Assembly (NCBI RefSeq): GCF_026571515.1 | Contig: NW_026861373.1 | Location: forward strand, 1 to 64,000 | Length of the DNA stretch: 64,000 nt | From: Ruditapes philippinarum | Taxonomy: Eukaryota | Direction: 5' to 3' | Part shown: positions 1 through 52,575 of the stretch, piece by piece | How the letters are laid out: every line of letters starts with the position of its first letter | Position numbering within the stretch: the stretch's first letter is position 1 | Made by a program: the position numbers and the translations under genes | Notes under the pieces: model-generated | What the model was told of the DNA's origin: nothing | The model's database searches: none | The model's input: the letters and a program-made list of their open reading frames with translations, nothing else

Positions 1-122
1 AATGTATTAAAAAAATAAAATCTAGGTATTAATAACATAATGTAGTACTTAACTATTAAAATTATTTAGAATTAAGCCTTACATTTGCTTAACATGCATT
101 CTAAAACGGTTGTATGTTTCAG

Positions 123-282
123 GTTGAAAGCCAATTCACACATTTGTATATAGTATATACCGTGTCAAGCAATACCGACACGTCAAATGAAAATTATGAT
201 GGAAAAAAATACATGGCTCAAGAAAAAGCACCTAGTCTGTTACAATGGAATGACTTCAAGAACTTGACACAAAGAAAACAAG
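123..282 (+). CDS. Gene A exon 1 (hydrophilic N-terminal extension; possible start Met at 213)
   Basis: ttcag|GTT...CAAG|gtatc; open frame VESQFTHL...QRKQ; same 160-nt exon at 35209-35368. Confidence 0.6.
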
Positions 283-27983: not shown

Positions 27984-29450
27984 ATAAATCAATTTATTTC
28001 TCAGGTAAGGAAATAGTTTTTTTTTAAATTTTTAACTATTTTAATCAATTCAGATATAAACATTAAAAATAAGTGATTTTTAAAACGGTAAAGTGAATTT
28101 ATGCAGATATTTACAAACTGACGAGGATGTATTCTTGGATGCGTGTAATTTGACTACTGGTTTCCCAACACTACTAGTTTCCCAACAATATATATCTGTA
28201 TTTAGAAAGAAAATGTTAATTTAAAGATATTGTGATTAACAGTAATTCGTAAGAATATTACTTGTGCATTCACTTTGTGTTGTCATTAAAGTAAATCGGA
28301 ATTATTTGTTGCGTTGTATTGGTACCAGAATTAAATGATATTTTATAGGTCCGTGATAAAACTGAAGTGGTTTACCTACAACAAACCTAAACCAGAAAGT
28401 GAATTCTTTATCAATATAGAATTTTTTTTAAAGGACTTGTGCCTAGTTGGAAATGATGTAACACTATCTTAAACAGGGAAATGAACGTTTCTCTTTCGTA
28501 CAAATTTAATTTAGAAAGATAAAGTGATTAGATCTCATAAAAGTGTGTGGCATTATTTGTAGCAGCAATATGTGAACTCAGTTGGTGTTCTGATAAAAAA
28601 TGAGTTCATTTATTACATGAATATTGAAAATTATTACATTAACATATTAACTTCAACAGTTTACGCCGCCAAAAAGTATTGATAGGTATTATACTGGAAA
28701 CATTGAAGACCACTGCTCCCGTCATGCCAATCTTTCAGCTTATAGTCATTTGGCCATGTTCAGGATATAAGCTATGTTTGAAATTTCATACCATTCAAAA
28801 TGAAATGTGAAGATGTATCCTGGCAAAATGAAACGGTTCGTTAAATTTATGTTTCCTTTATATATAATTATATATTATTATATTCTGAATTGAATTGCTT
28901 AAGTTTATAATATTAAGATAGTAAACTGTAAATATATACCTAGGTTCTTGACGAATTATGGCATTTGGTTCGAGGAAAATGTGAATTTTCATAGATTAAA
29001 TAGTTATATACTTATATGTTTTTGCTCACAAAACTTTTTAAGTTGAATAGTTTATCTTACAAATTACGTACCGTGTTTGTTGAAAATACTTTGTGAGTAT
29101 TACTTGACATAGTACCTAATAGAAAAATTATATTTTAACAGATTTTAGATTAATGAAGGGATTATTCGTATAGACTATAATCATGTTTAGTCGGAATTTC
29201 TTTTACATGCACAAAGTAAAGCGGTTTTCTTTCAAGTATGCAAATAAAAGAATACTAAACATTGTATCTGCAATTATAATGTAAAAATACTTTTTATTCA
29301 ATGTCACATTTATCTAGTAGAATGTTGTATATACTCGTATATAAGATACATGTTAAATATGACAGAGATGTATAAATAAATTGGTTTTCCAAATCTATTA
29401 TTAAACATATAGTGCAGCCGTACTGATATCGGTTAGTATTAATGAAAACC

Positions 29451-31996: not shown

Positions 31997-32634
31997 AAAC
32001 CTATCTAATATGTCAATATAAATCGGTATTGAATGCGTCTTCGCTATTGTAGTAAAATAGTAAAGTATATTTTTATTATAATTATCCTTATCTGATTATT
32101 TAAGTCGCACATGCAAACGAATGATGTTCTTCAAAACAGTATGAAACACTTTCAGTTTGTAGTTAATCGCTCATATGACAATGCTATAAAATAAAGTTAC
32201 ATTTTTATTAAGAATTTAAAGTTGTTTACCTGATTTTTTGTCTTTTCATATTGCTTTCTGATATTATGATATAACTGTATAAATAATTTTAGTCTAGCTA
32301 TTTCACACGAACTTAACCAGAACCGTTTTTGATGATCCTGATGTGATATAAATATAGATTCAGTTGGTTCCGTTGCATTGGATGGTGTCACAAGTTATAG
32401 ATAGAGATAAATAATGAACAACATTTTCTGTTTTACATGATTTGTTACTGTCAATTATTATTAAAGTGATTATGATTAAATATGTCTATCTAATGGTATA
32501 TAGTGCGTGTACAGGTTAAAGTCGATATTAGTTTACATTTCATTTTGCCATAATTCCTTTCAATTTATATTTTACTTCTCATAAACGGTTAATAGCTCAC
32601 CTGGTACATGAATCGTTCAATCGATATAAAGAGT

Positions 32635-32644
32635 GGGGAATTCC
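32635..32644 (+). promoter_or_regulatory. Consensus NF-kB site GGGGAATTCC upstream of gene B
   Basis: Matches GGGRNWYYCC; about 0.9 kb before a candidate 5' UTR exon at 33534-33589. Confidence 0.35.
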
Positions 32645-35208
32645 TTTTATATTTAAGGCAGATTTATATTTAATCCGAAACATTTTTCAATACCAACTGT
32701 TTGTCAATCACCATTACAGATAATAGTCAATCTTTTAAATTAAATAGTCAATTCAGCTCAACTTGACAATGAAAAAATGAACTTTGGCCACTTTAACGTA
32801 ATATTTTAGTATTAATAAGATGGTCACATGAAATTGAAATTAAAAAAAAACAAAACAAGTTGACCGGCACCCTTTCTTCTAATGATGAGATATTTTATAC
32901 AGAAATAAACATTTTAGAGTCACAAAATATAATAATCTTTGCACACAGCGTTTCCATAATCTGTGGACCAATTTTTATAAAATTATACAAAGATAATTAT
33001 TGAGTTCATCTTTACAAAATGACTTAAACTTTCAACAGTCTGTGATGAAAGAAAACATGAAACAACAACAATAAGCTTAACAATCAAATAGACAATACTT
33101 AGGAACAATTTTTGACCCTGAAACGGACCTTCATCCCGACAGTTGACAACGGATTCTTAAAAATGTGTTTGTTGTATTTAAGAATTATATCTCGGATTCC
33201 CGAATTATACGATTTAGAAGAGTTAAAAAGCATCATTGTGTTATTTTATCGAAAACGTAAACGCGTTAACGCTTTCAAGTAATGCAATATTCAGAAAACT
33301 TCATATAAAATATCTAATGAGTTAAATTTCATTGTTAATGTTTTCTTTATGTTCATAACTCATAAGCTCACAGAGGATCCACTATCAAACACAAAGCTCG
33401 TACGTAAAATTTCCAAATTGCTGCTTTCTGATTTTCTATAATTGGATAGGACATGAGTTCATTAGACAACGACACTCTTATAAATATAATTATTATCGTT
33501 GACTAATGGTATACTTTCCAATTTAACATTTAGAAATCTGGAACCTATTTGAGTATGTCAAGTGATGTAAAACTGTGTCACAAGAGCCGGTGAGCGCGAA
33601 GTCTTGTTATGACCTTTTTGTTTGTTTATATTACTGTGGCTTCTTTTTCTTAGTTTTAATATGGTTTTGTAACAGTATAAACATGTATGCTTCTTTTATG
33701 CAACTAGTATTTTCAAATGTTTCTCTGTTACTATATTGTTTGTAAATTTTACATTTAATTTAATTTTACCCATGAAATATGGTGCTATATCAGCCAAATA
33801 TATAGCATATTTGTGAAAAACAATTATGAAAATAAATATTAAAATGGGCGGAACCAAGATGGGACTACTTTTTCAGTTATTTCTCTTTTACAATGAGTAG
33901 CTTCAGCTATTCATTTCATCATTGACAGACATTATCTGGATATAATTTTTTTTCAAGACAGTATGAATTCGAAGCGCGTCACGCACCTATAAATAATCTA
34001 TGTATTACTCCGCGCTGTACAATTGCAACTGCGCAGAAAATAGATGTGTTCGTAAACAACGTTTTTCTTGAAGGTAAAATAATACAATAAGGTTGCTATT
34101 TTTTCTTCTTTTTTTTTTGAAGAATGGAATTTATCTTCACTTAACATGATGGAATTCTTTATATTTACTCATTGTCCCGGCTCGTGAAAATATATGGAAT
34201 TTTATGTTTCTTGAAAATATGCTCCATATTTCACCCAAACGAAAAACTATCCTCTTAGTATTCCTTCCTTGCATGAAATGTATATATATTTGCTATGGTT
34301 TTATTATAATACTTTCTGAATCATCAAATTCTGTGTGTTTGTTATGCACAGGCTTGGAGGATACCTAACCTTGTCTCAATGTCTCAAATGTTGAATTTCA
34401 TTGCAAATGCCATTTTGTGTATGTTATTTTTTCTCCTTATTGTAGTGCAGTATCCACTTTTTTTCGATACTCAATGCATATAGCTTTAAAATCTTTGGCG
34501 CAAAATATTATTTTAAAGACTTTGCTATCATCATAACTTAACTTTATTTATTTCATGGGAAAAGTTACATGGTTATGAATGGCAGCTTTAATATTGCCCT
34601 AGCTTGTCTCATTTACTTTGTTAACAACCTTCAATGATTGCTACTTTTGAAATAACTAATTAGAAATATATAAAAGGAAATGATTTCATTTATATCAGCT
34701 GTGCAGTTTTTGGTGGTTTGGAAACATATAGCTTTTGTAAATTTGCTTTTCCTTAACTGTTCACATGTCTTTTGATTAAATTGTTTTGGTGATAATTTCA
34801 ACATGTCATTCATGTTATAGTTATATCACCATTCTTTTATGTTATAAAATGATATCATGAAAAAAAAAAAACAAAAACAACGACCTGACTATTATGGTAT
34901 ACATTTCATTTTATACTTACTTTATTTAAAGAGCAGCATATTGATGATTTTAATTAATGATACAATACTTAGTAGGATATATTTTTATATATGCATATGA
35001 GAATGCATCTAATTAAATTATTTAAATTCGTTAAACAAATTGGAATAATAATGAAATGTTTCCTTAAGCTTATGGGTATCGAATACATTTTTATTTATAA
35101 AATATAGTCATTACTTAGATAATGTAGAAGATATAAAAACTATATCAAATTAAGAGCCGTACGAGTACATTTGCTCAACATGCATTCTAAAACGGTTGTA
35201 TGTTTTAG

Positions 35209-38200
35209 GTTAAAAGCCAACTCACACATTTGTATATAGTATATACCGTGTCAAGCAATACCAACACGTCAAATGAAAATGATGATGGGACAAAATACAT
35301 GGCTCAAGAAAACACACCCATTCTGTTACAATTGAATGACTTCAAGAACTTGACACAAAGAAAACAAGGTATCAATGAAACGCTTTTTATAAATGACCAT
35401 GAATGTTCATCGACATTATATAAATTCATAAAAACATGGATATGCTAATCATTTACTTACTGTTCATTTTAATTTTCATACTCATTTATCAGGTTAACAC
35501 ACAAAAATAAAAACATTATTTGAAATAAATTTTAGAAGCAGAATCAGTTGCACCTAAGGACGAGTACCGCTTATTAGTACAAAAGGAGCACCCGCAAGAA
35601 AAAAGCCAAGAAGCAGACAGTTATGTTCGTCAGATTTCAAGCTCAACGCAAGTTACAAAGGTATGTGATTGTAACCTTTCCCTAATTTTGATCAGTTATT
35701 AAAGTCTAAGTTTTTAGATTCAATGGTTTGATATGTTAAATTGAGGAAGCGTGGTTTCCACAATTTTTAAGATATATTGACAAAATTCCCAAGTTAATGT
35801 TGTCATGTTTCAATACAGAAACAAAAAGAAATTGCAAAATCTCAAAACTTTACAGTGTCTTTATTCATTTATTACATTCATTGCAAATGTGTTCGAATAA
35901 AAATATAAATATAAGCATATCAACTTTTGCAAGCGTTACTAAGATGTACTTATTTGTGCTTTTCGACTGTGTACTCCACTGGATGATTTTAAATGAATGT
36001 TCAAATTGGTTGATGTATCTAATCGTGAATTACATATGATAATATTTTCCATTTTGCCTACAATCTGAAATCAGACACACACTTTATAAGTAAAGCAATG
36101 AACTTTTGGTAAAACAAAAGTTAATGTTACTTTGCGATTCTGCTCAATGTATGCTACTATTATAATTTGTTTCCGGTGTCTTTTTAACAGATTTTGTTCT
36201 CGAATTGTTATATTTCAAAAGGTTTTGGCGAAAAAACATCGTGTGTTAGAATATGAGCATCTCAAGTCGAACATGGAGCATGCTTTAAAGAAAATGCCTG
36301 TTTCAACAGACATCAAGAGAGGAAGTCTTCCTTTAAATGGATCGATGTCCTGTACATACCCTATCCGTTTTAAAACATACGTATGTCTGTTGATGTTATA
36401 TCTTAACAGAGTTGCCATTTTCATATTTACTTATATCAAACCATCCGAGACAGCGAGCCTGTTAGGAATCTTCTGAGACAAGTTTATGAAAAATAACTAG
36501 TAGGATAAAGTCTGTAACGCGTTAGAATAAGCGTTTCAAAATATATGATTAACACTTTTAATTAATTTTAAACAAGCTAAAAGTAAACATTCGCGCTTAT
36601 TCCGTTTTTTCCATTTCACTTATTTAAAGATATATTGCTTTACTAGTATTTACTTGATTAATTTTATTCAAATGTGATAACAATGTTTATCCAATACGTA
36701 TGTGAATAAATACTCATATTAAATACTCTTGTTTTGCAAAGTAATTAATACTCACAGAGATTAAACGATTAAATAATTTTTCTTTTTCTAAATTCAGGTG
36801 TTTATGATTTTACTGTCACCCTATCTTTCCGATGCCATGAACATACAACCTCTAACCGAAAACGATCAAAGTCTCTCGAAGATACAAACCTTTGTGTCTC
36901 TCAGCACTCCGTACTGCAACCCATCAAATTTAAATATGACCTGCCCTTTTCAAGGAAGTGATAACATGCAACTATTAATCGATCGTTGCGAATTCAAGAA
37001 AATGTGTTCATCAGGATACACACCTCTATGTGTCAACAATGAAAAAGGAATGGCTTTCATCTGCGCTCCAGTACATCTTAGATGCGAGAAAGGTAAGCCA
37101 AACTAACTTTTAGTTGCTGTATGTTCAATCTCTTTAACTTTCTTTTGAATTGTGATTTTGTCTTTCTTTACAGAATAGATTATTTTTTCTGATTTTCCTT
37201 TTCTTACAAAATTGGCAAGATAGTTATTGCATTTCCTTACATGTCTGCTAACAATAAAATAAATGTGTCATGGTCCAAAGACTGTCCTTTCAATCGTACA
37301 ATGGTGAAAAATCATCAAATCTCTCAAAATATCTGAAATTAGTAATTTTTTATTTAAATTTGCCCTGTTCAATTAATATGCTTTGCTTGTATATGGTATA
37401 TTTTATTTTTATTGGCTTTATTGTTAAATTAAAATGTACTTTTTTAAAACTATGAGTCATCTATAAAATGTTTCTTTGTCGGCCGTTGCATTTCTCATTG
37501 CAGTCTTTGAGGAGGCTTAATTAAAACGAGTCCTGCTTTTCAATTTTGCAATTTTCATACTTTCTTTTAGAGCAATTCATACATTGTTCATTCATAATTA
37601 TATATTTTTTATTCATAATCGTATATAAATTAGCGTCAGGAGATTCATTAGCCGTCTAAAAGTGCGCACTTGGGCGGGAAATTTAAATATTAAATGATTC
37701 AAGCGCCTTGTCTAGTGCATACAGGAATTCGGTTTTTAGTGTGATTCTCAAATACTTAAGTTTCAGTCTCGCTCCTTTTCATTTAGGTCATTGGTGGAGA
37801 GTAATGAAAGACGAGGAGGACCCTTCAAAGATTAAGGTTACTGTCGAGAAATGTCCTACTGGTTATTTTCAAGAAACAAATTCCAACTGTATCAATGCAT
37901 GCAGATCAAAGCACTTAGATTTAACAAATATTGAAGAAAAATATTTGATCTATAGTGAAGGCAACCACATCTCTCCAACTATTGTCTATTGTAACTACAA
38001 AGAAGGATATTATAACAGAGCTGGGAGACTTCTATTAGATTATGACAGGGAAAGTAAACATGAACCATATTTTTGTAGTGGAAACGCTGCAAAGAACAGC
38101 CCATGTGTAGAAGGACAAGAACCCTTGCCTAGTAAGTTTTATTTGAAGCATGATTTAGAATCAAATTTCAGGACGATTGAAATGATATTTGCAGTATTTG

Positions 38201-41200
38201 CAAAAATTATATAATGAAATATAGTAAATATATTTTTAATGGTATTTCGTTTTACAATTACTGACCAATCGGTTAAATTAACATACTAATTTTTGTTTCA
38301 GGTGCTTTGAAAATTTAAAAAAAAAATGTGTTTATTGTAGATGCAACATGCGTTCTTCCTTGCAACCCACATGAATGTAGAGATGATCATGATAACTTTA
38401 TCTGCAAACAGACTTGCCGGTAAATAGTTCATTACCTAGAACTGCAGTCTTAACTAATGAACACATTTATCTATAAGTTCAAGAACTTCTTCCAGTTATC
38501 TTACATTACATAAAATATATTTCATTACATAGAACTTCAAAGACTTCATTTATCTATGTCTTATTTCAGGAATTTCTTCTACTTATCTTAGAATCTAAAA
38601 TAAATGAACATCTTTATTCATTTTTAATCAAACCACCACCTATCTTGGATCAAAAACATAATCACATATTTTCATTAATTTTAAAATTTTAATAGAATTT
38701 CATAACAAATTTGCAATATTTTGAAATGTCTACATTTATCAAGAAAAAGGCTGTATGTGGCACTACAGACAAATTATGAGTAACAGTCAATCAGTGTTTA
38801 CTTATAATCTCAGTAGGTTAATCATATTAACAAAATGTGACGAAATTGAAGAGATGAATTTGATTAATTTGGCAACTTCTGGTCCCTTGGAATGTTTAAT
38901 ATCTATTGCACACTATATAAGTATTTGAGTGAATGTTTTTTGATAAAAAATGGATACTTCTTTTGTAATTTTATCTCTTATTTTTTCCAGGGACCAGATT
39001 GGAATTGGACATTCCATAACAGTTATAGATAAACCTGACTTGGACACCGGTATGATACTTTACTCTGCTACATAAACATGTATTGTATTTTTATTATTTC
39101 ATATAGTTTTACTACAAATGTAAGCGCATGAATATCTTATTCACCATAACACCGTTTGTTCAGTATCTTTGAATAAATCGTAAAAGATTGAACGATATAT
39201 GATTTACTTTCCTCCGAGCTATGTGCTAGTTTCAGTCTTAGATGTTTTATATTTGGCGAGCGGTAGCCTAGTGGTTAAAGTGTCTGCCTCTCAACCAAGA
39301 GATCATGGGTTCGAGCTCTACTCGGGTCACGACAATGTTTTTTTCATATGAGACCAGTACTGGTTGGTTTCAGGAAGCGGACTCAAAAGTGTTAAATATA
39401 ATATCGAGCTTAAATAAACATGTTTAACCCATATTTGACTAGTTTTAAATTTTGTTTGCAATGGGTTTAAGCTATTACCCGTTGTTCAGAATAACCTCAT
39501 ATTTCATTATTATAATTTACTAAGTAACTGTAATCTGCCAACGTTTTATAAGTAAACCTTTCTCCGGAGATGGACATAATGCTCAAATGTCGAAATGTAT
39601 GCCAAGTTGAGCTTTATTTGACATGTACTTCGCTTGGCTTCGATAATCGAAATAGACCAATAAATTATGATGGTAGATGTTTTGAATAAAGTACATTTTT
39701 ATGCCCCCACAAAGTGGGGGGGGGGGCATATAGCGTTGCACTTGTCCGTCCGTCCGTCCATCCGTCCGTCCGTACGCCTGTCCGTACGTCCCGAAATCTT
39801 GTGAACGCAACTCCTCTTAAACCGGATGGCAGATTTTGCTTAAACTTCCAGGGATGAACAACCTTAATGTGTAGATTGTAGTAAAGGAAGGAATTTTTGC
39901 TGCGACCAAATTTAACATAATTATGGCCCTTTAATGATTTTTTCACTATATACCATATAGACATTTTGTGAACGCAACTCCTCTTAAACCGGATGGCAGA
40001 TTTTGCCTAAACTTCCAGGGTTGAACAACCTTAATGTGTAGATGGTAGTAAAGGAAGGAATTTTTGCTGCGACCAAATTTAACAGAATTATGTCCCTTTG
40101 TTATTTTTTTCCCTATATACCATATATATGTTGTCAGTGGGGGCATCCGTGTCCTTTGGACACAGTTCTAGTTTTGTATAGAAACTGTCCTAAATATAAT
40201 ATGACTTCCCCCTCCTTTTAACAACTAAACGCTACCATTAGAATAAGACGAATTCATAGAAAAATGTCTAGGTCATATGGGGTATTGCCTATGTAAAATA
40301 AAAAATAACTTTTAAATGACGAATTGTTATTTTAACTTTTAGTTGCACATTCACCATTTCCTCTTGAATCGGCATTTTATCACATAAAGAAAAGATAGAA
40401 ATAGACAAAAACCTCAAAGTCCGCTGTTGATACATTGGTCCTATTTATTGAAAACGTAAGTAATTGTATTAAACTGTTTCAGCAGAGTGCGACGGAGATT
40501 CATGGGTTTGTCAAAATGGAATATGTAAACAATCTTTTAACAAGTATGTCTGTCAATGCAATCCAGGATTTGTGAAGGATAGAGAAACTGAAAAATGTAT
40601 AGGTAATTGGTTAAAACTAGTTCTTGTACAAAAAATGCTGAAATTGTCTAAGCCTAATATTTATTATTCTAACACGACCCGCATGTTTCGCTATTGAATA
40701 AAGAAGAACCGAAAGTGTGTGTTATTATGCAATAAAGTCACAGTTGAGTTCTATATTTAGATATGTGACGTAATCATTATACATGTGACGTAACAACTAA
40801 AAGAATCCGACGCGCTGAAAATAAGTGGCGCAATTTTGCTTAATATCAGGTATGTTAGCATTTTTTTTGTTGATGTCGTGTTAGAATCGAAATAATATAT
40901 CCAAATCTGTGAATTTATCGCTTGATAACATCACTGTTTCTCGTTCGGATGCGCATCATTATATCACTCGGGCTACGCCCTCGTGATATAATTCGTCGCA
41001 TCCGAACTCCAAACAGTGATGTTATTGAGCGATAAAATCACTGTTTGGGATATATTATTTCTTAAACAATAGTCCGTCCGAAATTCAAACTTCCATATAA
41101 ATGGAAGGAACATCATTTCTATCATGACGTAAGTGAACGAACTTTTAAGATACCTTATTGAAGAAAATCAAAATTGTAGATCTACTTAAAAATTAGATGG

Positions 41201-44200
41201 GAACAAAAAAAATCGATTTCAAAAATTTTACCTATTCTTTAGAATTTTACGAATAAACAAACACATAAATAAATAAATAAATAAGTAAATTAATAAATTA
41301 TTCAATAGCGTAAATATTGAGTGAATAATAACGATACACAACACATAAGTAATATATATATATTTATATTACTTTTCTTTTTATTAAAAATATATTTAAC
41401 GCTTTTAGTAGTTAAAAGAAGCAATAATTTTAAATTTATGTTTTGATAAAAGCCATACCATGTGACTATGGAACGTTACTGTTTAACTCATACATAGATT
41501 AAATCTAATGTGTTCTGAATTTCATAACCTCGAGCAACCATTACCTTTATACTTTCAAAGTTTTGTTTGAAGGCTTATTCCAATTACAGAACCAGATGTG
41601 GGTTCCGGAACAAGACCAGGACAACACAAAGAATATATAATTGGTTTGGCGTTCATTCCTGTGGTCTTCATACTAGGTATTTATAACATTCAAGTACTTA
41701 CCGATCAAAATATAACATTACATATGTATTTTTCATCGTAAGGTTTATTACCAATTGTGAAAACTAATTTGACTGGTAAGCTAATTTCATGTTCTGAATG
41801 TCGTTAATTTGACATGTTTTATATATGATTTGACATTATTTTTATTAAAACCGAAAACGTGCTGCTCTTTAAACTAAAATTTATTAATTTAGTGGAATAA
41901 CTTGTTTTATTTTATGCTTTTCAGTGGATTACTGATTTATCCGTGAAAATTCTATTTGATAATTTCACAGTGAAAATTATCAAAATATAATTTCACACTT
42001 TTCAATGACGAAAATACTTTTTTGAGATTTTCCCCATGTGGTACCTGAATTTTATTTTTGCTGACAATTCTGACAATGTCAGGCTATTTAAAGAAAAAGC
42101 AAAGCTGAAATTGATAAATAACTTAAATAACTTAAATGACAAAAGTAATAAAAAGAAGAAAACTTACTTCTATTCATTCAAATTCCAATCACCAATTTCG
42201 TCTCTAAATTTTTTGTTTCATTTTTACAGTCTGAAAAATACATTCCTTCCACATGCAAAACTGCTCTTGATGATATTTTGGCATATTAAAGTATCCTATG
42301 AGCAATAACTGCCGTATGCTTTATGAAAAATTGAAAAGCTATGACAGCAATCAAGCCCGTAGAATAAGTAAACAACCCAGCGTTCCTGAGCCAGCTTCCA
42401 AGTTTTTTCCATTTCCCTAGCTGCTTTATGAATGTTTTCACATCTGTCAAGACTTATTTTTTGTCTGTTGCAATCCTCAAATAAGTTTTCTTTCTTTTAA
42501 AAAGGTGTATGACTAACAAATCCAAATGATATCCCTCTGAATCAAACACAATTATTCCTCCCGTGAAATACACAACTTCAAAAAATGGCTGCCGCTTACA
42601 TTTAACAAAGCCAGGTCTAATATAAATTCGCAGTAAGTAACAGAAATATGGATGGATGGTTGGACTTTTTCTCCTTCAAGAACTGTTTGTTTTCATTATT
42701 AAAAAAGCGATCATCATATTTTTTAATAAAATGAATGATATCACCGTCATTTAACGTTGATTGTCGAACTTATTTTTAAGCTCAAGACTTTTTGTATTTT
42801 ATGAGAAATTCTGACTAAATGGGGCTCTCAATGAGGAAAACAGATTTTGATATTACGTTAATGTTGTGGAAATTTCGTTTTAACTTGTTTTTAAGCATAA
42901 AATAAAAAGAAAATTTGTTTGTTTGTTGTGTAAGATGTAATTTTATTTCGTCTTGTGAACTTTAAAAACAGTATTCTAACTCGTGGGCACGCCACTCGTA
43001 AGAATACTGTTTTTAAAGGCCACTCGATGAAATAAAAATTCACCTTACACACAAACATCCTCTATTAAATAACATATTTGATAATGACAACAACAGTTTG
43101 TCTGTTCATATTTTTATAGAAAGGATTGTATTGTACAAAATCCTTTAGTTTAAGAATGGATATCAAGTTTCAATTTATTTAGCAGTTATAGACTCAAGAC
43201 AATTTCTTTTTTCAGTTGGGTTTTTCATTCTTTACCTTCTTTACCGACGCAATATATGTAAGTATATTTTGTAAATACAAACTTTAAATTCAAGTAAGTG
43301 TCCCATATTGATATATTTCCCAATAATAAGTCAATCGTGCAACCACATAAACATTTATTTGAGCATACCTAAAGTAATTATTATAATCGAAAAAGTGAAA
43401 TAATTAGTTCACTGTTCACTATTAAAACTATTATTATATCTTTTACAGGGAAACCAAAGTGTTTAACAGAAACACCTAGTAATGCATATCATGAAACCTC
43501 TTCATGTGAGACAGGTACGAATAATTCCAATTATGATATGTTTAGGTATTAAATAGCAGCTGAAACACTCAGAATTTGACAGAAACGTTTATATCAGTAT
43601 ATATATCTTGTTAATGAATAAAAATTCAGCATGTATTTTACAAACTGAAGGTAATGTATTTCGATACTTCTTTAGTAACAATACATTCAAGAGGCTTTTT
43701 GCCAAAGGGTACAATTTCAGAAAAACACACTTAAATCTAGATATTTCTTTTTGGCAGATAATAAGTGATAGCATAGATTCATTTTGCTATCGTTTGATAA
43801 ATAAATCAAAATAGAAATGTGATACTACGGTTCTCGGCAGTTTTTGTCTTTCTATGTCATTTCCTTTCCATTATGAATTTAATCTTTGAAACATAATAGC
43901 TTCCTTCTACTGAAATTATTTTCTATCCGTTTGTCTTGGATGTATAAGTAATTACCAACTAAATAAACACGTGTTATTTCTATTAATATGTGTACTTCTA
44001 CATTTAGTTTGTGTTACTGCTGGAGCGTGAATGTGTTATTAAAGATCCTGTATGCTGTAATTAAGGTTGCTACATGTATCACACTTAAGTGAAATGTTAT
44101 ATATATGTATATAATTATGCTTCTAAAACAATTATCAAACATCGAAGAATATGTAAAATTCATACTGAAAATTTTTGTTCACATAATATGTTATCATTAA

Positions 44201-47200
44201 AATATATGCATTCATTTCTTATTGAAAAATTTCACTTAAACTTTATAGAAAATAATTCTTTAATTACCCCCCTTTATTAACATGAAAATGTAAATTCGTT
44301 AAAAACTTTACCAATAATGCTTTTTGGAATTTACACTTTTAATAAATCTTCATTTGAGCATTATATTAATGATAAAAAACCATAAAGAAATTGAGTTACA
44401 GAATCTTTAAATTAAACACATTAATCCTTCAACCGAGACTTTATGGATTCGATCCATGCTTGCGTCACGACCATGTTAATGAATATGACACCAGTACTGA
44501 TTAGTTAAAGGAAGCGGACATGAAAGTCATAAATAATGATTGCAAGAACTTGTTTCACAATCAGGCTTAAATCAATAAAAGCTTAGTCCACAAATTAAGC
44601 AGGTGAGAGCAAGTCAGGAACATTGTGTAATAGTTGCCATCAGAAACATATAAGTAAACGTTACGAAAACATGTTTCCGATCAATATGTCTCTAAACTAT
44701 CTAACAATTTTAATAGGTGAGATTAGTTCAGGAACATCGAGTAATGATTCACCAAGTGTTACCAGAAATAAATCGAGCCGGAATGATCAGCGTATAACAT
44801 TCGACAATACAGAAACTGTGAATATAACAAATAATACTTACCATTACAACGAAACACATCCAGAACAACAAATTGCATTACATTCTGTAGGTATATACAT
44901 CATTTGAAACAACTAGAAGGAAAAGGGAAATAATAAAAATTGCATTTAAAAGAAACATATATTTCTTTAATGAAATAAATTATAAAAATGTAAGTGTTCC
45001 TTATGCAAATTATTCTTATATATAATGTACTATTTTAACCATTAACTTTCAGGGTATGTCTGGTCAATTGTTACAAATCGGTCATTATCGCTCCATGTGT
45101 GTATTTCTTTATTGAAACTTTTTCATTTTCATATGACCGGTTCCTTATCTATAGCTGGGCAGATCAATTGAACAAATTAAGCAGCGTAGTCAATGTTTTT
45201 AATTGGTGTATTTAATAAACTGTGCATACTATGCTTGTATAAATATATTTTAAAACAGTTTTGCCAGTAAAGACCTAAATTATTCATGAATTTAATTATC
45301 GTGCTATTTTATACATAACCAAATTCATAACTATTTTATATACAATATGATTTTAAATAAATGATATCTTGCGTTAAAATTGTGATTATGTATTACAAGT
45401 ATCAAAAGTTCAGAAATCCGGAAGATGACACAGTTCCTCTTGCAGCTGAAAAAGGTGAATGAAATATTTCTTTCTTTTGTTTTGACAATTAATTCATTAT
45501 AATTAAGTTAATCTACTGATACAAGATTTTGATGTGATTACGACACAGTTGTCAAACTGCCTGCGTTTTCTTCTGGGTCTAGTTTTATCTGTTATTGTTA
45601 AACGATATGATTTCCTTTCGATATTATTTTCGTATGGCGCCCAGCCGTTTTATTTCTTAAATCGAGCTCCGCACCTCCGCGGGGTGAAGTTTAACTAATA
45701 AACTTCGCCCCGCGCCTTCGCTAACTAGCGTATTTTTGCTCCGCTCCTCCGCATTTTCACTTGTTTATTCTCGATTTTTCGCTTTACGGGGTCGCGGGAC
45801 GAATACACACTTATTAGCGTGTTTTCGCTCCGCGCACCGCCGATTTATTTCCTCAATCTTGCCCCGCGCCCCCACTAATAAGCGACTTATGCTCCGCGCC
45901 TCCTCCATTTAAATTTGTTAATAATCGACCTTTTCGCTTGGCGGGGTCGCGGAGCGAAAACACGAATGGCACAAATGAGCCACACTATTCCCGCATGCAT
46001 CGGTTGTGAATGACGTCATGTTAACTATGTGTTAATATGGATTGATAAAAATGCACGCACTTTATCACTGCTATCAATGAAATTCCATGTTTGCTAACAA
46101 TGTATTTGCTGTTTACTAAATGTATAAAATTAATTTTAATAATGCTAATGTGTATATATTTTTATTGAAGCAATTTATGGAATAAACATTTTCTTTCAGT
46201 TTTCACCTTGCTGGAACCGAAAATTAATATTCTTTGGTATCTGTACATAGTCAGTCGTAAACTTCTACCATGTTTTATATTGTTGTTAGTTCATATTTGA
46301 TCGCCTTAATTAAAATCAAATTAAAAAACGTATACATCCATTATTCAGAAAGCGTTATTAGCGTGATCACGCATCTTCGTATATAGATTTAAAGCAAACA
46401 CACATGCGGTACCATTTAAGATTGCAACACAATAAGTCTTTAATCAAGTGTTTTGTACATAATAATGTGTCATTATGAAAATTGACAGACAAAAACAGAA
46501 AATCTTATATTAAACAAAATAAAAAACAGACAAGCCAAAAAGAGGATGAAATATATAAAGCGTAGTTACCGATATAATGTATATTGGCCGTTTTATTTAT
46601 AGATGCCTACTTTTGAACTATGTTGGTAAAATTCTAAGGCGGTACATTGTTATCTAAAATATTATAACTGTTGTAAAACACACAATTCCTGTAGTGATAT
46701 GTTGAAAACATTTTCAGCAACATCAACCAGTGGCAATATACAGAAAGTTACAATAGAGACTATAGGAGTAACAAGTGAAGACGAAACAAAGCCTTTGTTA
46801 CCTTATTCTGAGACGGGTAAGAAGAACTAAATTAATTGACAATATAAGACAAGTCTCATGAAAATTGTCTTAAAACAGAGAACGTAGTCACTTTAAAGAA
46901 TTCAATATAACTGTAGGAAGAACTTAATCATTATTACTGCATCAAACATTAAATTTCAAAATCTATACATTTCAAGTGTCTCACAACTTAAAGAAAACAT
47001 TGACACAGTGATTTTATTATTAGTTTTAAATATAAATACGATCTGGAATAGAAGTCTCTGTCACATTTATTTTTATAAATGTCATTCCTCATTGAATAAT
47101 TTAAAGACTAAAATAGTTTTGATAAAATAAAAGTGAAGTCAGTTTCAGATTAAAATGTCAAAAATATATACTGTTTAAGTTTCATCGTCATTGTTAACTA

Positions 47201-48381
47201 GCAGGCAGGATACATTTTACGGAATGTAAGAAAGAAACAGATGATACCAACTCAGAAGCTTATATAAGACAGCTACATGACCTTATGAAGAAATGTGCAG
47301 CTGTAATGTACAAGGATAACATTATTGGGACTGCTTTTCGTATTGGTCCTTCTTACGTGATCACAGCATTTCATGTCATAAAGATTATTGTAAAAGGTTG
47401 AAACCGTTTGATTTCATATATTATATCTATATCTTTGAAAATATAAGAATATTTTTTTTGTTACTTTAGTTTATAAATGTTTAATAAAAAAAGATGGCAA
47501 ATGAATTTAGAAAAGTTTACCCTCTCAAATGGCGTTTAACAAGCTAAATGATAGATGAATATAAGTGCATGTTTTAGCATTTCTTTTTTTACCAACTAAG
47601 TAAATTGATTTAATTCATCATACATATACAATGTATATTTTTATATTTATTTATTATTTTTTCATGAAACCTTTTCTTTGCAGATTTAAGTGGGAACTTC
47701 GATTTTTCACTGATTGATCATGAAAATGTAACTTTAAACTTTAATGAAAATGTGAACAATCTACATAAGTACAAAATTCGACTTACATATGTATTTCATG
47801 ATGAGCAGTACGATTTTGCGATCCTTGACATTAAGGATGTTCATCTTCAGACAGAATTTCCGAAAGCATTTCTGCTGTGGAGACATAATGTGTCTCCTTC
47901 GGACAAATTGAAAGGAACAATAATAGGGTTTGGTCATCAGGTTAATTCTAATGAAAAACAAGAAGAAACATGTCAGTTAAATATTAAAGACTTTACACAG
48001 CGGCTCACAGACGCCCGTGTAAGCTTGTCTCAAAATGAAATGGCTTACAAAGAGGACTTGCGAAATCAAAATAAAGATGAACGACTAGTCGATCTCGGAT
48101 ATTCAGGTATTGAAAGCGACGAGTACATAAAAGTGGATACTTTTATGGGTCAAGGACTATCTGGTGGTCCTGTAGTAACAAATGAAGGACATTCTCCAAA
48201 AGTCGTAGCTATGTTTGTTGGTGAAGTGCCCCGTTTTTATCATGAATTGTCCCGGAATAAACAATCGACCTTCAAAGAGAGACATTTGTTTAATATTTGT
48301 CTCAAAATGTCTAAAATACACGAGATTTTGGTGAATAAAAATCCAATGCTAGCATCTAAAATCTTTCCTAAGGAAAAATAA
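35209..48381 (+). CDS. Gene B: paralog of gene A (Cys-rich+EGF ectodomain, TM, cytoplasmic FAM111-like serine protease)
   Basis: Exons 35209-35368, 35536-35660, 36222-36380, 36798-37092, 37787-38131, 38341-38419, 38991-39049, 40483-40602, 41590-41676, 43216-43257, 43449-43514, 44717-44886/44890, (45053-45096/45100 and 45400/45414/45446-45454 ambiguous), 46718-46816, 47202/47205-47396, 47684-48381. TM YIIGLAFIPVVFILVGFFILYLLY-RR. Triad His 47372, Asp 47812, Ser 48160 (GLSGGP). Confidence 0.85.
36798..37092 (+). CDS. Gene B exon 4: leader plus Cys-rich ectodomain
   Basis: attcag|GTG...AAAG|gtaagc; paralog of 3041-3341 with a 6-nt deletion. Confidence 0.85.
37787..38131 (+). CDS. Gene B exon 5: TNFR-like Cys-rich region
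   Basis: 345 nt, same as A exon 5. Confidence 0.9.
39256..39427 (+). mobile_element. tRNA-derived SINE
   Basis: A box tagcctagtgg, B box gggttcgagc, body ...ccagtactggttggtttcaggaagcggac; another copy at 44428-44580. Confidence 0.7.
39697..40173 (+). mobile_element. Helentron/HINE (Pearl-like) element with two 167-bp core repeats
   Basis: Sub-TIR atgccccc/gggggcat, (CGTC)n, repeats starting at 39801 and 39968, 3' hairpin gtgtcc-ttt-ggacac, ctagtt end, T-rich flanks. Confidence 0.85.
40483..40602 (+). CDS. Gene B EGF-like exon (AECDGDSWVCQNGICKQSFNKYVCQCNPGFVKDRETEKCI)
   Basis: Six Cys, phase 1-1. Confidence 0.9.
40660..41063. mobile_element. Interspersed element with ~170-bp terminal hairpin (40890-41060)
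   Basis: Arms aaataatatatccaaa...cactcggg / ccctcgtg...tttgggatatattattt; inner inverted pair ttctaacacgac / gtcgtgttagaa. Confidence 0.6.
41590..43257 (+). CDS. Gene B transmembrane exons (41590-41676 and 43216-43257)
   Basis: 24-residue hydrophobic helix split by a phase-1 intron and followed by RR. Confidence 0.85.
41925..43065 (+). mobile_element. Interspersed element with terminal hairpin (42928-43051)
   Basis: tgtgtaag...taaaaacagtattct...agaatactgtttttaaa...cttacaca palindrome; related copies near 12965 and 34060; 5' boundary approximate. Confidence 0.6.
44717..44886 (+). CDS. Gene B Ser/Asn/Thr-rich cytoplasmic exon (no counterpart found in gene A)
   Basis: aatag|GT GAG ATT...; donor gtaggt after 44886 or gtatat after 44890. 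Confidence 0.7.
45640..45990. repeat. GC-rich ttcgccccgcg / gcggggtcgc interspersed repeat (related copy at 17355-17520)
   Basis: Shared aaaacttcgccccgcg, ctaataagcg and gcgaaaagtcgagaa motifs in direct and inverted orientation. Confidence 0.6.
47202..48381 (+). CDS. Gene B protease exons (47202/47205-47396; 47684-48381)
   Basis: GTAFRIGPSYVITAFHVI / YDFAILDI / VDTFMGQGLSGGPV. Confidence 0.93.
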
Positions 48382-50192
48382 ATAAAGGGATTAAAATCGT
48401 TGCTAATAAAAGAAGAAGACGATGAAAATATGAAGCAGAAGAGAACAGCAACTAAAGCGATGATGTAGTTTTGAAGAAGAAACAAAGTGACCTTCATTAT
48501 GTAATACATTTGTAATTTATTCTTGAATATGATTTTGATTTCTGTGCTTGATTAACTGGGCTGAAAAGATCATGTATGTGCACTTGAGAGATATATGTGG
48601 AATGACATATGAGGACCAAGAGATAATCTAATGAACATATATTCTAGTTTTTTTATGGAAGATGTATGAGGGGATAATGTAAGATTAGCAGGAGGTCATC
48701 TAAATGTACATATACATAAGTTGTTATGGAAAAATTATGAGGGGTCACCTTAGATGACAAGGGGGTATTTAAGATGTATAATAGGGCTGGGCGAGTATCA
48801 AAGTACTCGAATAATCACGAATCAAAATGAAAAATTGTACGATTATCTGTCAGTCCAGAGATTGTGGATCCCGATCTTATTTATTTATACACATTCACTG
48901 CTTCTCACAATCTAAAAGTCGAACTAAAATTACAATTTGAGTATGAATTATGCGACGTTTACTGAAATACAATTTGCCGATTAAAGACAGGAAGTAAACA
49001 AACAAGCTAGAAAGTCATTAGTTTCCTAATTAAAATCACTTTATCCACATGAACCTGACATTCTACCAACATTAACGATAATATCCATAATATACCCCCA
49101 ATATAGTTATTTATACTATAAAGAGGTATTTTAAATATCATTTATATTGTCAGAACTACAGAACATGTACATTTAGGTAATGCAGATTATCCGATTGTCA
49201 GCTATTTTCTGACCCTTCGCGAGAAAAGAATCCAGCACTTTTAGGTGTTTAGAAATGAGTACCGCTCAAGCCGATGCTAGGGGCGTGAGGGATGTTGCAC
49301 TTTCCATTATCCCTCATTTACAGACTCGATTAAACCGAGTCTGCAATTTTTACGTAAGTTTGCTGTTTTTAATGCTTCCAAGGGCTCTCTTTTTTATCAG
49401 TAATATATATACATTTAGATGATCCTTTACTCATCTTACGTAATATCATCACATGGGTTCATATCGCGGTTTAATTATTAGGTATATAAATGAAAATTCA
49501 TAATAATACTATTGTATGTCCTGAACACTTTAAAATTAGTTTCAATTTTTAGACATACATTTTATATTCATAAGAAGGATTAGGCATATGCACTATTTAC
49601 AAATGACATTCACCGGGACGCTGATCATTTTCACAACAATTTATAGTTTAATCAGGATGATCACGCTTTATCATAAATTCTTGCTTAATTTATAGGCTGC
49701 AACGGCGGGGCTTTATATGCTAAGTGTTCTATCCCATGATTCAAATTATCGAATACATATTTTTCAGTAGAACTATACAATAAATATTTTTAATTAAACA
49801 ATGTACATTTTCAAATATAGAACACACATATAGAAAATTATCGCACTCAATACTTTTTATGGTGAACAAATATTCAGCAGGATTGAATAAATATTATGAT
49901 ATAAAATATAAAATTAGAGTTATACAATATAAATATTTGATGTAGAACAAAAATTTAATTTATTAAATATTGCAACGTTTAACATGCCATATGAACCTAT
50001 CAAATTATGATTTTAGAAAATAGGGGCTTCAATACGTATTTCTATAACATTGCATCGGGCACCAGCAAAACAAAAACAAAATGGTGTGTATTTGCCAAAC
50101 GTTTGTTGGTTTAATATTAGAACAGATCATACCAATCTAATTTGAGTCTATAAACGACTATTGCACATATATTTTTATTCAATATCGTACTC

Positions 50193-51840: not shown

Positions 51841-52575
51841 CATTTAGAAGAAGTAGTTGTTGGCAATGAGGCAGATAAATCTAACAAGCATGGAGCCAAA
51901 TGCTTAAAAACTGCTGGAATGGTTGAAGTTATGAACAAAGACGAAAGAAAGCATTTGTTACTTGATTCTCAGATTGGTTTGAATGATTGAACTTAATTTT
52001 AAATACTATCTCGATTCCAATCGTTCAAGTATCAATAAATTCACTGCTCTGAGAAACTAAAAAAGTATGGCGATAAAAAATACGGTGTATTTGATATTTG
52101 TTGTAGTTTGAATAATTTTTCTGCAACGTATTTATACATCAAGTTGGTAATTTATGAAGCAATGTTCATGGTCTAATTATGAAGAAAGCGTACCATATCA
52201 TAAGCCTCACTTAACTTATTATGCACAGTTTATAATAATGATTATTTCGTGACTTTAATTTTAATTGTTTTCAAGACTAAATTATAGTTCATATACGACA
52301 ACAGTTTAATTCTCGTCAGATATGACTGGTATGACTTTCATTTATATATACTGTAATAATTTCATTTTGTTGGAGAACTAATAAAAGCTAATCATATTAC
52401 GGGCTTTAAAAAAGAAAATGGATGCTTCCTACTCTCAAGCGTTTATCAGTCTGCTACACGACCTTATGATGAAATGAAATGTGCAGCTGTTATGTTTAAG
52501 GATAAAGTTATTAGGACTACGTTGGTCCTAAATATGTGATGACTTCATTTTATGTCATTAAGTCCTTTGTAACAG
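51841..52575 (+). pseudogene. Pseudogenised family member: dileucine linker exon (51841-51976) plus disrupted first protease exon (about 52376-52575)
   Basis: KDERKHLLLDSQI matches A's EEEKEHLLANSNI. The protease exon reads SQAFISLLHDLMMK/CAAVMFKDKVIRT/VGPKYVMTSFYVIK with frameshifts (including a duplicated tgaaa) and His to Tyr. No last exon found. Confidence 0.8.

Follow-up and report, generated by a model that had tools for sequence, protein, structure and literature searches.

A second Ruditapes philippinarum gene coupling a predicted receptor to a FAM111-like protease in a tandem family

Introduction

Does this Ruditapes philippinarum locus really encode a Cys-rich receptor and a protease in one transcribed gene, and if so, what might such a protein do? 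The locus lies in the window, i.e., the 64,000-nucleotide stretch of contig NW_026861373.1 analyzed here (positions 1 to 64,000), in which a sequence-only reading had placed a second full receptor-protease gene (gene B) at 35209-48381. That reading took gene B to define a tandem family and, together with module X, a pseudogene, and gene C, to indicate the birth-and-death evolution of invertebrate immune loci.

Gene structure and transcription

The second full gene was borne out. Spliced from the window DNA with a local script, gene B (LOC132715423) has 17 exons, all GT-AG and all on the forward strand, and its product is identical to P0059 (XP_060554404.1, isoform X2) over 928 of 928 residues plus the stop codon. 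The coding sequence starts at 28800 in exon 1 (28800..28835, 36 nt), which carries the start codon and residues 1-12 of isoform X2, matches P0059 exactly, and ends at a GT donor. Exons 2-17 fill the interval 35209-48381, with 35209 as the exon 2 acceptor and 48381 as the final base of the stop codon. Other RefSeq isoforms have an alternative first exon or begin at Met43, and the fusion is retained in all five isoforms.

RNA-derived contigs from four independent runs, belonging to different studies, contained spliced gene B sequence and between them covered every junction from the transmembrane (TM) exon to the exon of the catalytic His (E10>E11, E11>E12, E12>E13, E13>E14, E14>E15, and E15>E16). 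The exon 10 junction, 41676>43216, was found in runs X2 and X3, as were the junctions of exon 12, the one with exon 13 also appearing in run X8; junction 44886>45400 (exon 13 to exon 14), exon 14, and exon 15 were present in all four runs. One 2140-nt contig from run X3 spans all the TM-to-His junctions, with ~105 nt of sequence ahead of the TM exon and 1.3 kb past the His exon, reaching into the 3′ UTR. In run X2 the acceptor at exon 16 is shifted 3 nt downstream, in agreement with isoform X3, which lacks Ala632. Gene B is a real, spliced, intact gene, and its TM and protease exons are joined in one spliced RNA. Transcription as a single unit, the absence of which that reading had named as a refutation, was observed from E10 to E16.

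That RNA junction evidence begins at E10, downstream of E9>E10, together with the presence of a protease-only gene, gene X (RefSeq LOC132715427, 267 aa), 25 kb upstream, could be taken to mean that prediction has merged separate ectodomain and protease genes; a related suggestion is that gene B is a haplotype of its relative gene A. We regard such an annotation or assembly artefact as hardly tenable, and it is largely refuted already. The run X3 contig is one spliced RNA, and there are homologous 2.6-kb contigs, intronless and of transcript size, in which a single ORF runs from the signal peptide through the ectodomain and TM to the protease. Moreover, the gene B protease exon is 38 to 43% identical to all other copies in the 1.4-Gb assembly (nearest copy, 43%), and dS relative to gene A exceeds 1.2 in the 3′ half. 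These values, with the tandem arrangement of A and B on one contig, rule out an uncollapsed haplotype of A, which the sequence-only reading had itself named as a possible refutation. The same receptor-protease design is found again in gene A, in two other R. philippinarum genes on contig C11291, where the ectodomain-to-protease exon spacing is also ~10 kb, and in Mercenaria mercenaria proteins. The earlier view that the fusion is no one-off artefact therefore stands.

Receptor half

The predicted protein consists, in order, of a disordered N terminus, a signal-like segment, a Cys-rich ectodomain with an EGF-like domain, a TM helix, a disordered linker, and the protease. The N-terminal extension is encoded by exon 2 (35209..35368; phase of the following intron, here and below, 1), exon 3 (35536..35660; phase 0), and part of exon 4 (36222..36380; phase 0). 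Residues 1-160 are predicted to be disordered (AF2, pLDDT <50), the N-terminal stretch measuring ~157 residues. The remainder of exon 4 encodes the first half of a signal-like hydrophobic segment that is internal (~158-175), the second half being contributed by exon 5 (36798..37092; phase 1). In the homologues P0008, P0009, and P0018, the aligned segment is a true signal peptide at the N terminus. Since 115 to 157 residues precede the hydrophobic segment in every RefSeq isoform, it is not certain that gene B has a cleaved signal peptide; its product may be two-pass with both ends cytosolic or may be translated from a later Met.

The ectodomain that follows is disulfide-rich (~300 residues, 24 Cys) and ends in a single EGF. 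Its first Cys-rich module is in exon 5 and a conserved one with the motif CPxGxYQ...YCNY...GYYN in exon 6 (37787..38131; phase 1), a module with at least 19 copies in the R. philippinarum genome. Exon 7 (38341..38419; phase 2) and exon 8 (38991..39049; phase 1) complete the region up to the EGF-like exon 9 (40486..40602; phase 1), on which the Pfam matches are weak and under Pfam's own cut-offs (hEGF, E = 2e-5; EGF, E = 8e-4). The only TNFR-related Pfam match was TNFR_nem on the EGF exon (E = 0.29); with TNFR_c6, P0059, P0058, and P0003 had no match up to E = 1. Fold matching was carried out with a model of the homologue P0068 (mean pLDDT, 82) in place of gene B's own ectodomain. All matches listed by Foldseek were TNFR-family chains, at E = 6e-3 or weaker, and ranks 1-22 by VIA-align were likewise all TNFR family, at Z scores (4.4 to 3.0) under the tool's reliable level. 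The models thus weakly suggest a TNFR-like fold for the gene B ectodomain.

A single strongly hydrophobic segment, residues 473-497, forms the predicted TM helix and is split between exon 10 (41590..41676; phase 1), which encodes the juxtamembrane region and the first half of the helix, and exon 11 (43216..43257; phase 1), which encodes the second half plus the RRNIWKPK stop-transfer residues. Because homologues have N-terminal signal peptides, the ectodomain holds 24 Cys versus 3 in the protease domain, and the TM flanks carry four K/R on the C-terminal side versus two on the N-terminal side, the Cys-rich part would lie outside the cell and the protease in the cytosol. The two are connected by a linker of ~145 residues, of which 502-645 are predicted to be disordered (AF2). 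It is encoded by exon 12 (43449..43514; phase 1), exon 13 (44717..44886; phase 0), exon 14 (45400..45454; phase 1), and exon 15 (46718..46816; phase 1). No Death-fold or TRADD match was found in P0059 by Pfam at E up to 1, a search that a divergent TRADD-N may escape.

Protease half

The protease is encoded by exon 16 (47202..47396; phase 1), with its N-terminal alpha1 helix and catalytic His689, and exon 17 (47684..48381), with the rest of the FAM111-like domain, Asp740, Ser856, and the stop codon. Pfam matches in P0059 were limited to Trypsin_2, Trypsin, and EGF-type domains, Trypsin_2 just above its cut-off (30.6 versus 27.6 bits), and phmmer with gene B alone found no protease in the PDB. 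A profile of 47 family members, in contrast, matched human FAM111A (8S9L, E = 4.6e-19; 8S9K, E = 1e-18) across the whole domain (profile positions 57-347, chain residues 6-275), the next match being a staphylococcal Spl-like protease (E = 2.3e-5). Residues 650-928 are modeled with pLDDT >90 as a double beta-barrel chymotrypsin fold (AF2), for which the best six Foldseek chains were all FAM111A serine protease domain (SPD) (8S9K and 8S9L first; E = 1.9e-12 to 6.8e-11; target-normalized TM-score, 0.70 to 0.73), with other S1 proteases at E = 3e-9. By profile and by predicted fold alike, the closest relative of this domain is therefore the human FAM111A protease domain. Because identity is only ~16 to 18%, it is to be seen as a relative of that domain and not as its orthologue. 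Whole-protein orthology with FAM111A/B was rejected as well, the N-terminal part being a TM receptor and UBL domains and a PIP box being absent by Pfam.

As the sequence-only reading had stated, the putative catalytic triad is intact (His689, Asp740, and Ser856 in GLSGGP, i.e., GxSGxP). Genes A and X keep it too, and Asp and Ser are each conserved in 47 of 49 aligned family sequences. His is missing from 19 aligned sequences, of which 13 have a gap (mostly short products without that exon) and six another residue. It is very improbable, in our judgment, that the gene B protease is a catalytically dead scaffold serving only protein-protein interaction. Triad residues have indeed been lost in a few members (P0025 and P0034 have Asn at the Asp position and no Ser), and the Pfam scores barely exceed threshold, but gene B itself retains the full triad with GxSGGP, and dN/dS is 0.38 across an old divergence.

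Modeled as a homodimer, residues 636-928 gave a score of 0.49 (best control, 0.00), a result that may be recall of the solved FAM111A dimer 8S9K; the mark applied, reached by 21 of 30 solved homodimers and none of 23 solved single chains, shows likeness and not binding. Three runs agreed on at least 80% of contacts, placing the interface at 648-661, 718-719, and 787-791 (pLDDT, 84), so that helix 650-660 forms the predicted dimer interface. In FAM111A, substrate cleavage requires dimerization via the N-terminal SPD helix (PMC10920703).

We consider there to be about an even chance that gene B is a receptor whose ligand-driven dimerization activates a cytosolic protease to give an immune or cell-death signal. 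The ectodomains would be clustered by a possibly multimeric ligand or by the surface of a pathogen, and clustering would pair two cytosolic protease domains via their N-terminal alpha1 helices. Pairing would, as in FAM111A, order the active site and lead to proteolysis of cytosolic substrates, possibly including the receptor's own linker. An immune or cell-death signal would be the outcome, following the proximity logic by which death receptors activate caspase-8 but within one polypeptide.

Alternatively, the protease might act mainly in cis, cutting its own or a neighbor's disordered linker to free a cytosolic signaling fragment, with no dimer-activated cleavage of other substrates. FAM111A cleaves itself immediately upstream of its protease domain, a reaction for which dimerization is not required (PMC10920703); in gene B the disordered linker lies directly upstream of the protease and, with three exons where gene A has one, is the family's fastest-changing part in length. 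Yet no cleavage site, conserved or otherwise, was identified in the linker, the alpha1-helix interface predicted for the dimer has been kept, and protease genes that stand alone, such as X, lack a linker that could be cut. We consider self-processing of this kind unlikely as the main activity and retain dimer-driven activation as the working model.

Tandem locus and evolution

Identity between genes A and B is 80% in the ectodomain and falls to 25% in the juxtamembrane/TM region, 33% in the linker, and 40% in the protease, confirming the divergence noted earlier for the latter three. Exon 2 is 93% identical in DNA to gene A positions 123-282, with no indel; exon 4 has kept its frame, with a dN/dS of 0.46; and exon 9 ends a stretch that is 77 to 87% identical in DNA. 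The A/B duplicate, introns included, ends at 40605. All introns common to A and B have the same phase (1,0,0,1,1,2,1,1,1,1,1 ... 1,1), and all differences in exon length are multiples of three. The claim of the same exon phases holds for these shared introns, with the nuance that a single 69-nt linker exon in the gene A model corresponds to three exons in B (170, 55, and 99 nt), i.e., two extra, exons 13 and 14 being absent from that model.

With dN/dS at 0.31 to 0.47 in every region and all exonic indels in frame, the A/B comparison marks gene B as evidently under purifying selection. The pair is mosaic, because dS is low in the 5′ half (0.15 to 0.33) but exceeds 1.2 in the half that encodes the TM, linker, and protease. 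A young 5′ half and an old 3′ half point to gene conversion or module exchange.

The tandem family is confirmed: besides genes A, X, and B, the window contains a short, weak His-exon relic at 52515-52586 (E = 0.003), and just past its end lies gene C, which has ectodomain exons and none for a protease within 25 kb. Of the proposed birth-and-death evolution, the tandem family was seen, but the history is not simple, given the different ages of the two gene halves. The family probably diversifies by duplication plus an exchange or gene conversion that combines the sensor half with effector halves that are old and diverged.

Discussion

The designation of the locus as immune draws on analogy with the protease's partner domains in other clam proteins, where the FAM111-like domain is fused to HEPN_DZIP3+Death and to Mab-21+TPR. 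A non-immune role in adhesion, development, shell or tissue remodeling, or membrane proteostasis, with tandem expansion as ordinary bivalve family inflation, would suit the EGF and Cys-rich ectodomains common in adhesion and developmental receptors. It would also suit the ectodomain dN/dS of 0.31, which indicates purifying selection where pathogen sensors typically show a diversifying pattern. We nevertheless judge such a role quite unlikely: the protease module is elsewhere fused to Death, HEPN_DZIP3, and Mab-21/cGAS-like domains; FAM111A is an antiviral restriction factor (PMC9798293 and PMC11847056); and the family is lineage specific, clustered, and modular, like the bivalve receptor-like expansions linked to apoptosis and immunity (PMC8195603).

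The expansion in question, the receptor-like TRADD-N proteins of Crassostrea virginica (Kaur et al. 2021, PMC8195603), is lineage specific and combines a constant Cys-rich extracellular region and one TM with variable intracellular apoptosis/immunity modules. The gene B family would follow the same logic of a constant sensor with swapped effectors, again in a bivalve that is sessile and marine. In the oyster proteins, DED plus TRADD-N are followed by Death, STAND, HEPN, or GTPase modules, whereas gene B has neither DED nor TRADD-N by Pfam and its protease comes directly after the linker. No trypsin or FAM111-like effector appears among the metazoan proteins in the portion of PMC8195603 covered here.

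Like FAM111A (PDB 8S9K and 8S9L; MEROPS family S1, no subfamily assigned), gene B has a predicted intracellular trypsin-like domain with no conserved disulfides and triad order H-D-S, and in the model its N-terminal helix forms the dimer interface, as that of FAM111A does (PMC10920703). FAM111A has a chymotrypsin-like specificity. Unlike FAM111A, gene B lacks UBL domains, a PIP box, and a DNA-binding region, and its protease is attached to a membrane receptor by a disordered linker. Our literature search found no paper describing a single-pass receptor with a cytoplasmic FAM111-like protease; PMC9798293, in the section concerned, lists invertebrate FAM111A-like proteins without UBLs, none of them transmembrane. 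Type II transmembrane serine proteases (TTSPs; TMPRSS2, hepsin, matriptase, and enteropeptidase) are also membrane-anchored S1 folds and are among the lower Foldseek matches. In TTSPs the signal anchor is N terminal, and the disulfide-rich protease lies outside the cell and is activated when the zymogen is cleaved, whereas the topology of gene B would be reversed, with the FAM111-like protease C terminal to a stop-transfer TM. TTSP identity was rejected on the position of the Cys-rich/EGF modules N terminal of the TM, the few Cys of the protease, and the K/R-rich flank on the protease side.

With the TNFR death receptors (Fas, DR4/5, and TNFR1), gene B would share a type I-like single-pass layout. 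The best fold matches to the P0068 ectodomain, weak at Z ≤4.4, include HVEM, Fas, TNFR2, 4-1BB, and DR6, and the proposed proximity activation would parallel that of caspase-8 by the death-inducing signaling complex. Gene B differs in lacking a Death domain and TNFR_c6 and in carrying its protease in cis, a predicted chymotrypsin-fold serine protease and not a caspase. A broader reading, possible though doubtful, is that venerid clams possess a "death receptor in one chain," in which a TNFR-like ectodomain, TM, flexible linker, and dimer-activated FAM111-type protease take the place of the relay of adaptor and caspase in the extrinsic apoptosis of vertebrates. If this were true, it would, taken with the Death/HEPN and cGAS-like fusions of the same protease, imply that FAM111-type proteases started out as interchangeable effector modules of innate immunity and that FAM111A/B of vertebrates are their nuclear survivors.

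Gene B encodes a spliced receptor-protease

Querying with the RefSeq protein of gene A (P0003, from LOC132715424, the upstream tandem paralogue) retrieved the product of gene B, P0059 (XP_060554404.1, LOC132715423 isoform X2, 928 aa), encoded on the same contig; these protein matches place the window in the Manila clam, Ruditapes philippinarum. P0059 mapped onto the window, AT-rich eukaryotic DNA belonging to contig C9860 (160,775 bp), as 17 exons from 28800 to 48381, with every junction solved and GT-AG ends throughout; local splicing of these exons gave a translation identical to P0059, followed by a stop. The sequence-only reading had placed the gene at 35209 to 48381, i.e., from the acceptor of exon 2 to the end of the stop codon; exon 1 is 36 nt long and lies 6.4 kb upstream of exon 2. 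A stretch of Ns occupies 27204-27983. The five RefSeq isoforms differ solely in two NAGNAG choices (Ala420 and Ala632) and in the first exon and start Met, and all five retain the ectodomain, the transmembrane (TM) segment, and the protease, confirming the proposed receptor-protease. RefSeq already lists the gene as an "uncharacterized protein," and the novelty is the reading of its architecture.

In a word screen, 46 to 63% of the sampled words of 46600-48500 were present in many sequencing runs, a share that RNA contigs with exons alone would fit, since exons make up an estimated ~58% of this stretch. Contigs of four runs from four studies, one run being declared RNA-Seq, were placed on 41560-47420, where all annotated junctions between the TM exon and the exon encoding the catalytic His were found with GT..AG ends. 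Junctions 41676>43216 and 43257>43449 were found in runs X2 and X3, 43514>44717 in runs X2, X3, and X8, and 44886>45400 and 45454>46718 in all four; 46816>47202 was found in three, the remaining run taking a +3 acceptor in agreement with RefSeq isoform X3. Run X3 covered all junctions at equal depth in a single 2,140-nt contig, the first ~105 nt of which lie upstream of the TM exon (compatible in length with the 117-nt EGF exon) and the final 1.3 kb past the His exon. The RNA contigs differ from gene B by 0 to 8 mismatches per piece whereas the paralogues are ~40% identical in protein over the same part, indicating that the transcripts are gene B's own. Together with the recurrence of the architecture in homologues, the spliced RNA running from the TM exon through the His exon supports the view that the fusion is no one-off prediction artefact.

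Intron 13 occupies 44887-45399, donor 44886 being joined to 45400 in all four runs. The stretch 44790-45100, which had been proposed for RHIM-like motifs, is therefore intronic past 44886: exon 13 ends ...EQQIALHS, reading resumes YQKF... in exon 14, and 44903-45182 is covered solely by low-depth unspliced contigs (depth ~3). In three other intronic stretches (41756-43127, 43912-44695, and 45872-46067), depth is in the hundreds to thousands, compared to ~6 to 39 in exons, and variants and odd joints are numerous; these stretches probably derive from repeats or transposable elements that are transcribed.

The protease domain is closest to that of FAM111A

Terminal exons at 14.7, 22.4, and 47.7 kb of the window match Pfam Trypsin_2 weakly and are 32 to 38% identical among themselves. 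The gene B protease exon alone scores 21 bits, below threshold; with the His exon added, the complete domain (in P0059) passes at 30.6 bits. As a single sequence, P0059 found no solved protease in a phmmer search of the PDB, which returned marginal EGF matches only. A profile of 47 family members, on the other hand, matched the human FAM111A protease domain over its full length (E values of 4.6e-19 and 1e-18), followed by staphylococcal Spl-type proteases (E ≥2e-5) and HtrA (E ≥~0.06). The structural model gave the same leader, with six FAM111A chains heading the Foldseek matches (E values of 2e-12 to 7e-11, TM-scores of 0.70 to 0.73) and TMPRSS2, plasmin, and others as runners-up (E ≥3e-9). 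The catalytic triad, already judged intact, comprises His689, Asp740, and Ser856 and is conserved across the protease family.

Orthology to FAM111A was rejected because the UBL domains and PIP box are absent from P0059 according to Pfam. In the part of the FAM111 evolution review considered here (PMC9798293), UBL-less FAM111A-like proteins are listed in soft coral and amphioxus, no transmembrane FAM111A-like form is mentioned, and FAM111A is counted among the few S1-fold serine proteases that work intracellularly, which are described as rare.

Topology and ectodomain

An AF2 model built with a 49-row alignment predicts a disordered N-terminus (residues 1 to 160), a short helix forming a signal-like segment (158 to 173), a beta-rich module (186 to 282; pLDDT 63 to 86), a poorly modelled Cys-rich region plus EGF (283 to 440), a TM helix (475 to 501), a disordered linker (502 to 645), and the protease (650 to 928; pLDDT >90). 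Three sequence features make it very likely that the ectodomain is extracellular and the protease intracellular. The ectodomain contains 24 Cys residues and the protease domain 3; of seven family members compared, six have more K/R in the C-terminal than in the N-terminal TM flank; and three homologues, P0018 and P0008 (each from a 2.6-kb intronless contig) and Mercenaria P0009, start with ordinary signal peptides that align with the internal hydrophobic segment of gene B. A TTSP-like arrangement with an extracellular protease was rejected on the Cys counts and the K/R-rich flank on the protease side.

The N-terminal extension of gene B, ~157 residues, is conserved and in frame, with a dN/dS of 0.46; if translated, it would make gene B a two-pass protein or the segment an internal signal. 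The signal-like segment (...RFKTYVFMILLSPYLSDA; residues ~140 to 175, window 36222-36820) is internal, with intron 4 splitting it. A conventional signal peptide would result from an in-frame Met located 25 residues ahead of the predicted cleavage-like SDA site; the RefSeq isoforms always start upstream of this Met. Homologue P0066 likewise has an extension, of ~75 residues; P0008, P0009, and P0018 have none (P0008, P0018, and P0066 are Logan transcript contigs).

The fold of the ectodomain was approached through homologue P0068, whose modelled ectodomain (30-row alignment, mean pLDDT 82) found no strong match. Its top Foldseek matches were all TNFR-superfamily receptors, at weak E values of 6e-3 to 0.2, as were ranks 1 to 22 in VIA-align, again weak (Z of 4.4 to 3.0). 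The TNFR models in Pfam did not match the gene B protein, and a protein atlas search with residues 176 to 460 returned mollusc clusters only, with scores of ≤0.79 that are at chance level by calibration. A TNFR-like ectodomain is thus a consistent but weak lead from modelling.

Genes A and B are mosaics of two ages

The 5′ 5.5 kb of the gene B locus (35097-40605) duplicates window positions 15-6172, in gene A, at 77 to 87% DNA identity including introns. Exons of this 5′ half are 89% identical with gaps all in frame, and introns ~74 to 82% identical with numerous indels. As the sequence-only reading had noted, exon phases are the same, being identical at shared introns with exon lengths differing by multiples of three, and the 3′ parts are diverged: protein identity is 79 to 80% through the EGF, falling to 25% in the juxtamembrane and TM part, 33% in the linker (three exons of 170, 55, and 99 nt in gene B versus one of 69 nt in the gene A model), and 40% in the protease. 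Synonymous divergence is 0.15 for the N-terminus, 0.33 for the ectodomain, 1.9 for TM plus linker, and 1.3 for the protease, with dN/dS at 0.31 to 0.47 in every part, indicating that both halves are constrained and that their ages differ. Either gene conversion homogenised the 5′ half, or that half recently spread onto old, diverged effector halves. That gene B might be an uncollapsed haplotype of gene A, one of the refutations named at the outset, was ruled out by this two-age divergence, with its old 3′ half, and by the finding that no copy of the gene B protease exon in the 1.4-Gb genome is >43% identical.

A further similarity, between 42526-42948 and 12966-13373 in a gene A intron (74%), was rejected as a gene part and taken for a repeat, since it is not collinear and falls in introns that RNA contigs cover to great depth with numerous variants. 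In intron 8, the minus strand (39583-40167) contains two tandem ORF copies, 85% identical (39668-40006 and 39949-40167), Gly/Arg/Thr/Asp-rich and repeat-like; this is probably a repeat element and explains the 767-nt size difference from the gene A intron.

Sensor and effector as separate modules

Among 1.84 billion representatives, scanned exhaustively with HMMER, only 57 relatives of the gene B protease exon were found, and all those that could be named are from bivalves (Ruditapes, Mercenaria, Mya, and Argopecten). A TM segment lies upstream of the protease in ~12 clusters of the family. In other members, the protease is fused to HEPN_DZIP3 (P0016 and P0017), to HEPN_DZIP3 with a weak Death-domain match (P0033), or to Mab-21 plus TPR, architectures typical of cytosolic immunity and cell-death proteins; many members stand alone. 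A homologue search with P0003 or with the ectodomain region of P0059, limited by word-based sensitivity and a length window, gave three Ruditapes paralogues only.

The genome search bore out a tandem family of several copies, with at least 20 matches for the protease exon and at least 19 for the conserved ectodomain exon. A second cluster, on contig C11291 (25885-248951), has seven ectodomain-exon copies, all of the same strand, plus two protease exons (227176 and 248247). For each of two ectodomain exons, a protease exon follows ~10 kb downstream, the spacing seen in genes A and B; no protease exon was detected near the other five. The gene ending at 248951 (LOC132720279, P0058) shares the long linker with gene B and is 82% identical to it in the ectodomain and 43% in the protease.

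Partial members occur in and next to the window. Gene X (21984-23148, plus strand; LOC132715427, XP_060554415, P0004, 267 aa) has two exons with the full triad region (Trypsin_2, 28.5 bits), no ectodomain, and no TM; it may be a gene of its own or an alternative 3′ end of gene A. Gene C, at 63957-64926 of contig C9860 (L001:3957-4926), has exons homologous to ectodomain exons 5 and 6, at 30 to 48% identity to those of A and B, and its own signal-like segment, with no FAM111-like protease exon within 25 kb downstream. A His-exon relic at 52477-52586 (plus strand), recovered as two tblastn pieces in adjacent frames and matched weakly and over a short length by the family HMM (E of 0.003, 52515-52586), has no matching last protease exon downstream and is probably the pseudogene mentioned in the sequence-only reading. 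Stand-alone proteases and ectodomain exons lacking a protease indicate that sensor and effector are separate evolutionary modules. The mosaic A/B history, with halves of different age, does not fit the plain birth-and-death first suggested. Overall, the original observation is confirmed and its interpretation supported, with a mosaic family history.

A possible route to protease activation

Substrate cleavage by FAM111A requires a dimer formed via the N-terminal helix of the protease domain, according to the part of PMC10920703 considered here. A homodimer model of gene B residues 636 to 928 scored 0.49, versus 0.00 for the best control, passing a mark reached by 21 of 30 solved homodimers and 0 of 23 solved single chains; the pass may be memory of a solved relative and is therefore read as likeness, not binding. 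Three runs share ≥80% of contacts (pLDDT 84), and the modelled interface comprises helix 648-661 plus 718-719 and 787-791. Given this dimer likeness, a receptor-type layout, and a linker that is long and flexible, there is, by analogy, about an even chance that a ligand would cluster the receptor, the cytosolic proteases would dimerise, and the protease would thereby be activated. The main rival, a protease chiefly engaged in self-processing, seems to us rather unlikely.

Our literature search on FAM111 in invertebrates or bivalves, transmembrane forms, and TNFR found no description of a surface receptor with a FAM111-type protease as its cytoplasmic tail. The closest published analogue is the oyster expansion of Kaur et al. 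(PMC8195603), which, in the part considered here, combines a constant Cys-rich ectodomain, a TM helix, and DED plus TRADD-N with variable effectors; unlike in gene B, no FAM111-like protease figures among the effectors described there.

With their two-age mosaic, genes A and B provide a clean case of gene conversion or module exchange within a tandem receptor cluster. Bivalves, which to our knowledge have no adaptive immunity, suffer mass mortalities in aquaculture. Gene B represents a new effector class among their modular "sensor plus swapped effector" receptors. If clustering does activate the protease, this would be a new, compact route from an extracellular cue to cytosolic proteolysis and, because dimerisation would be under ligand control, a tractable system for FAM111-type activation.
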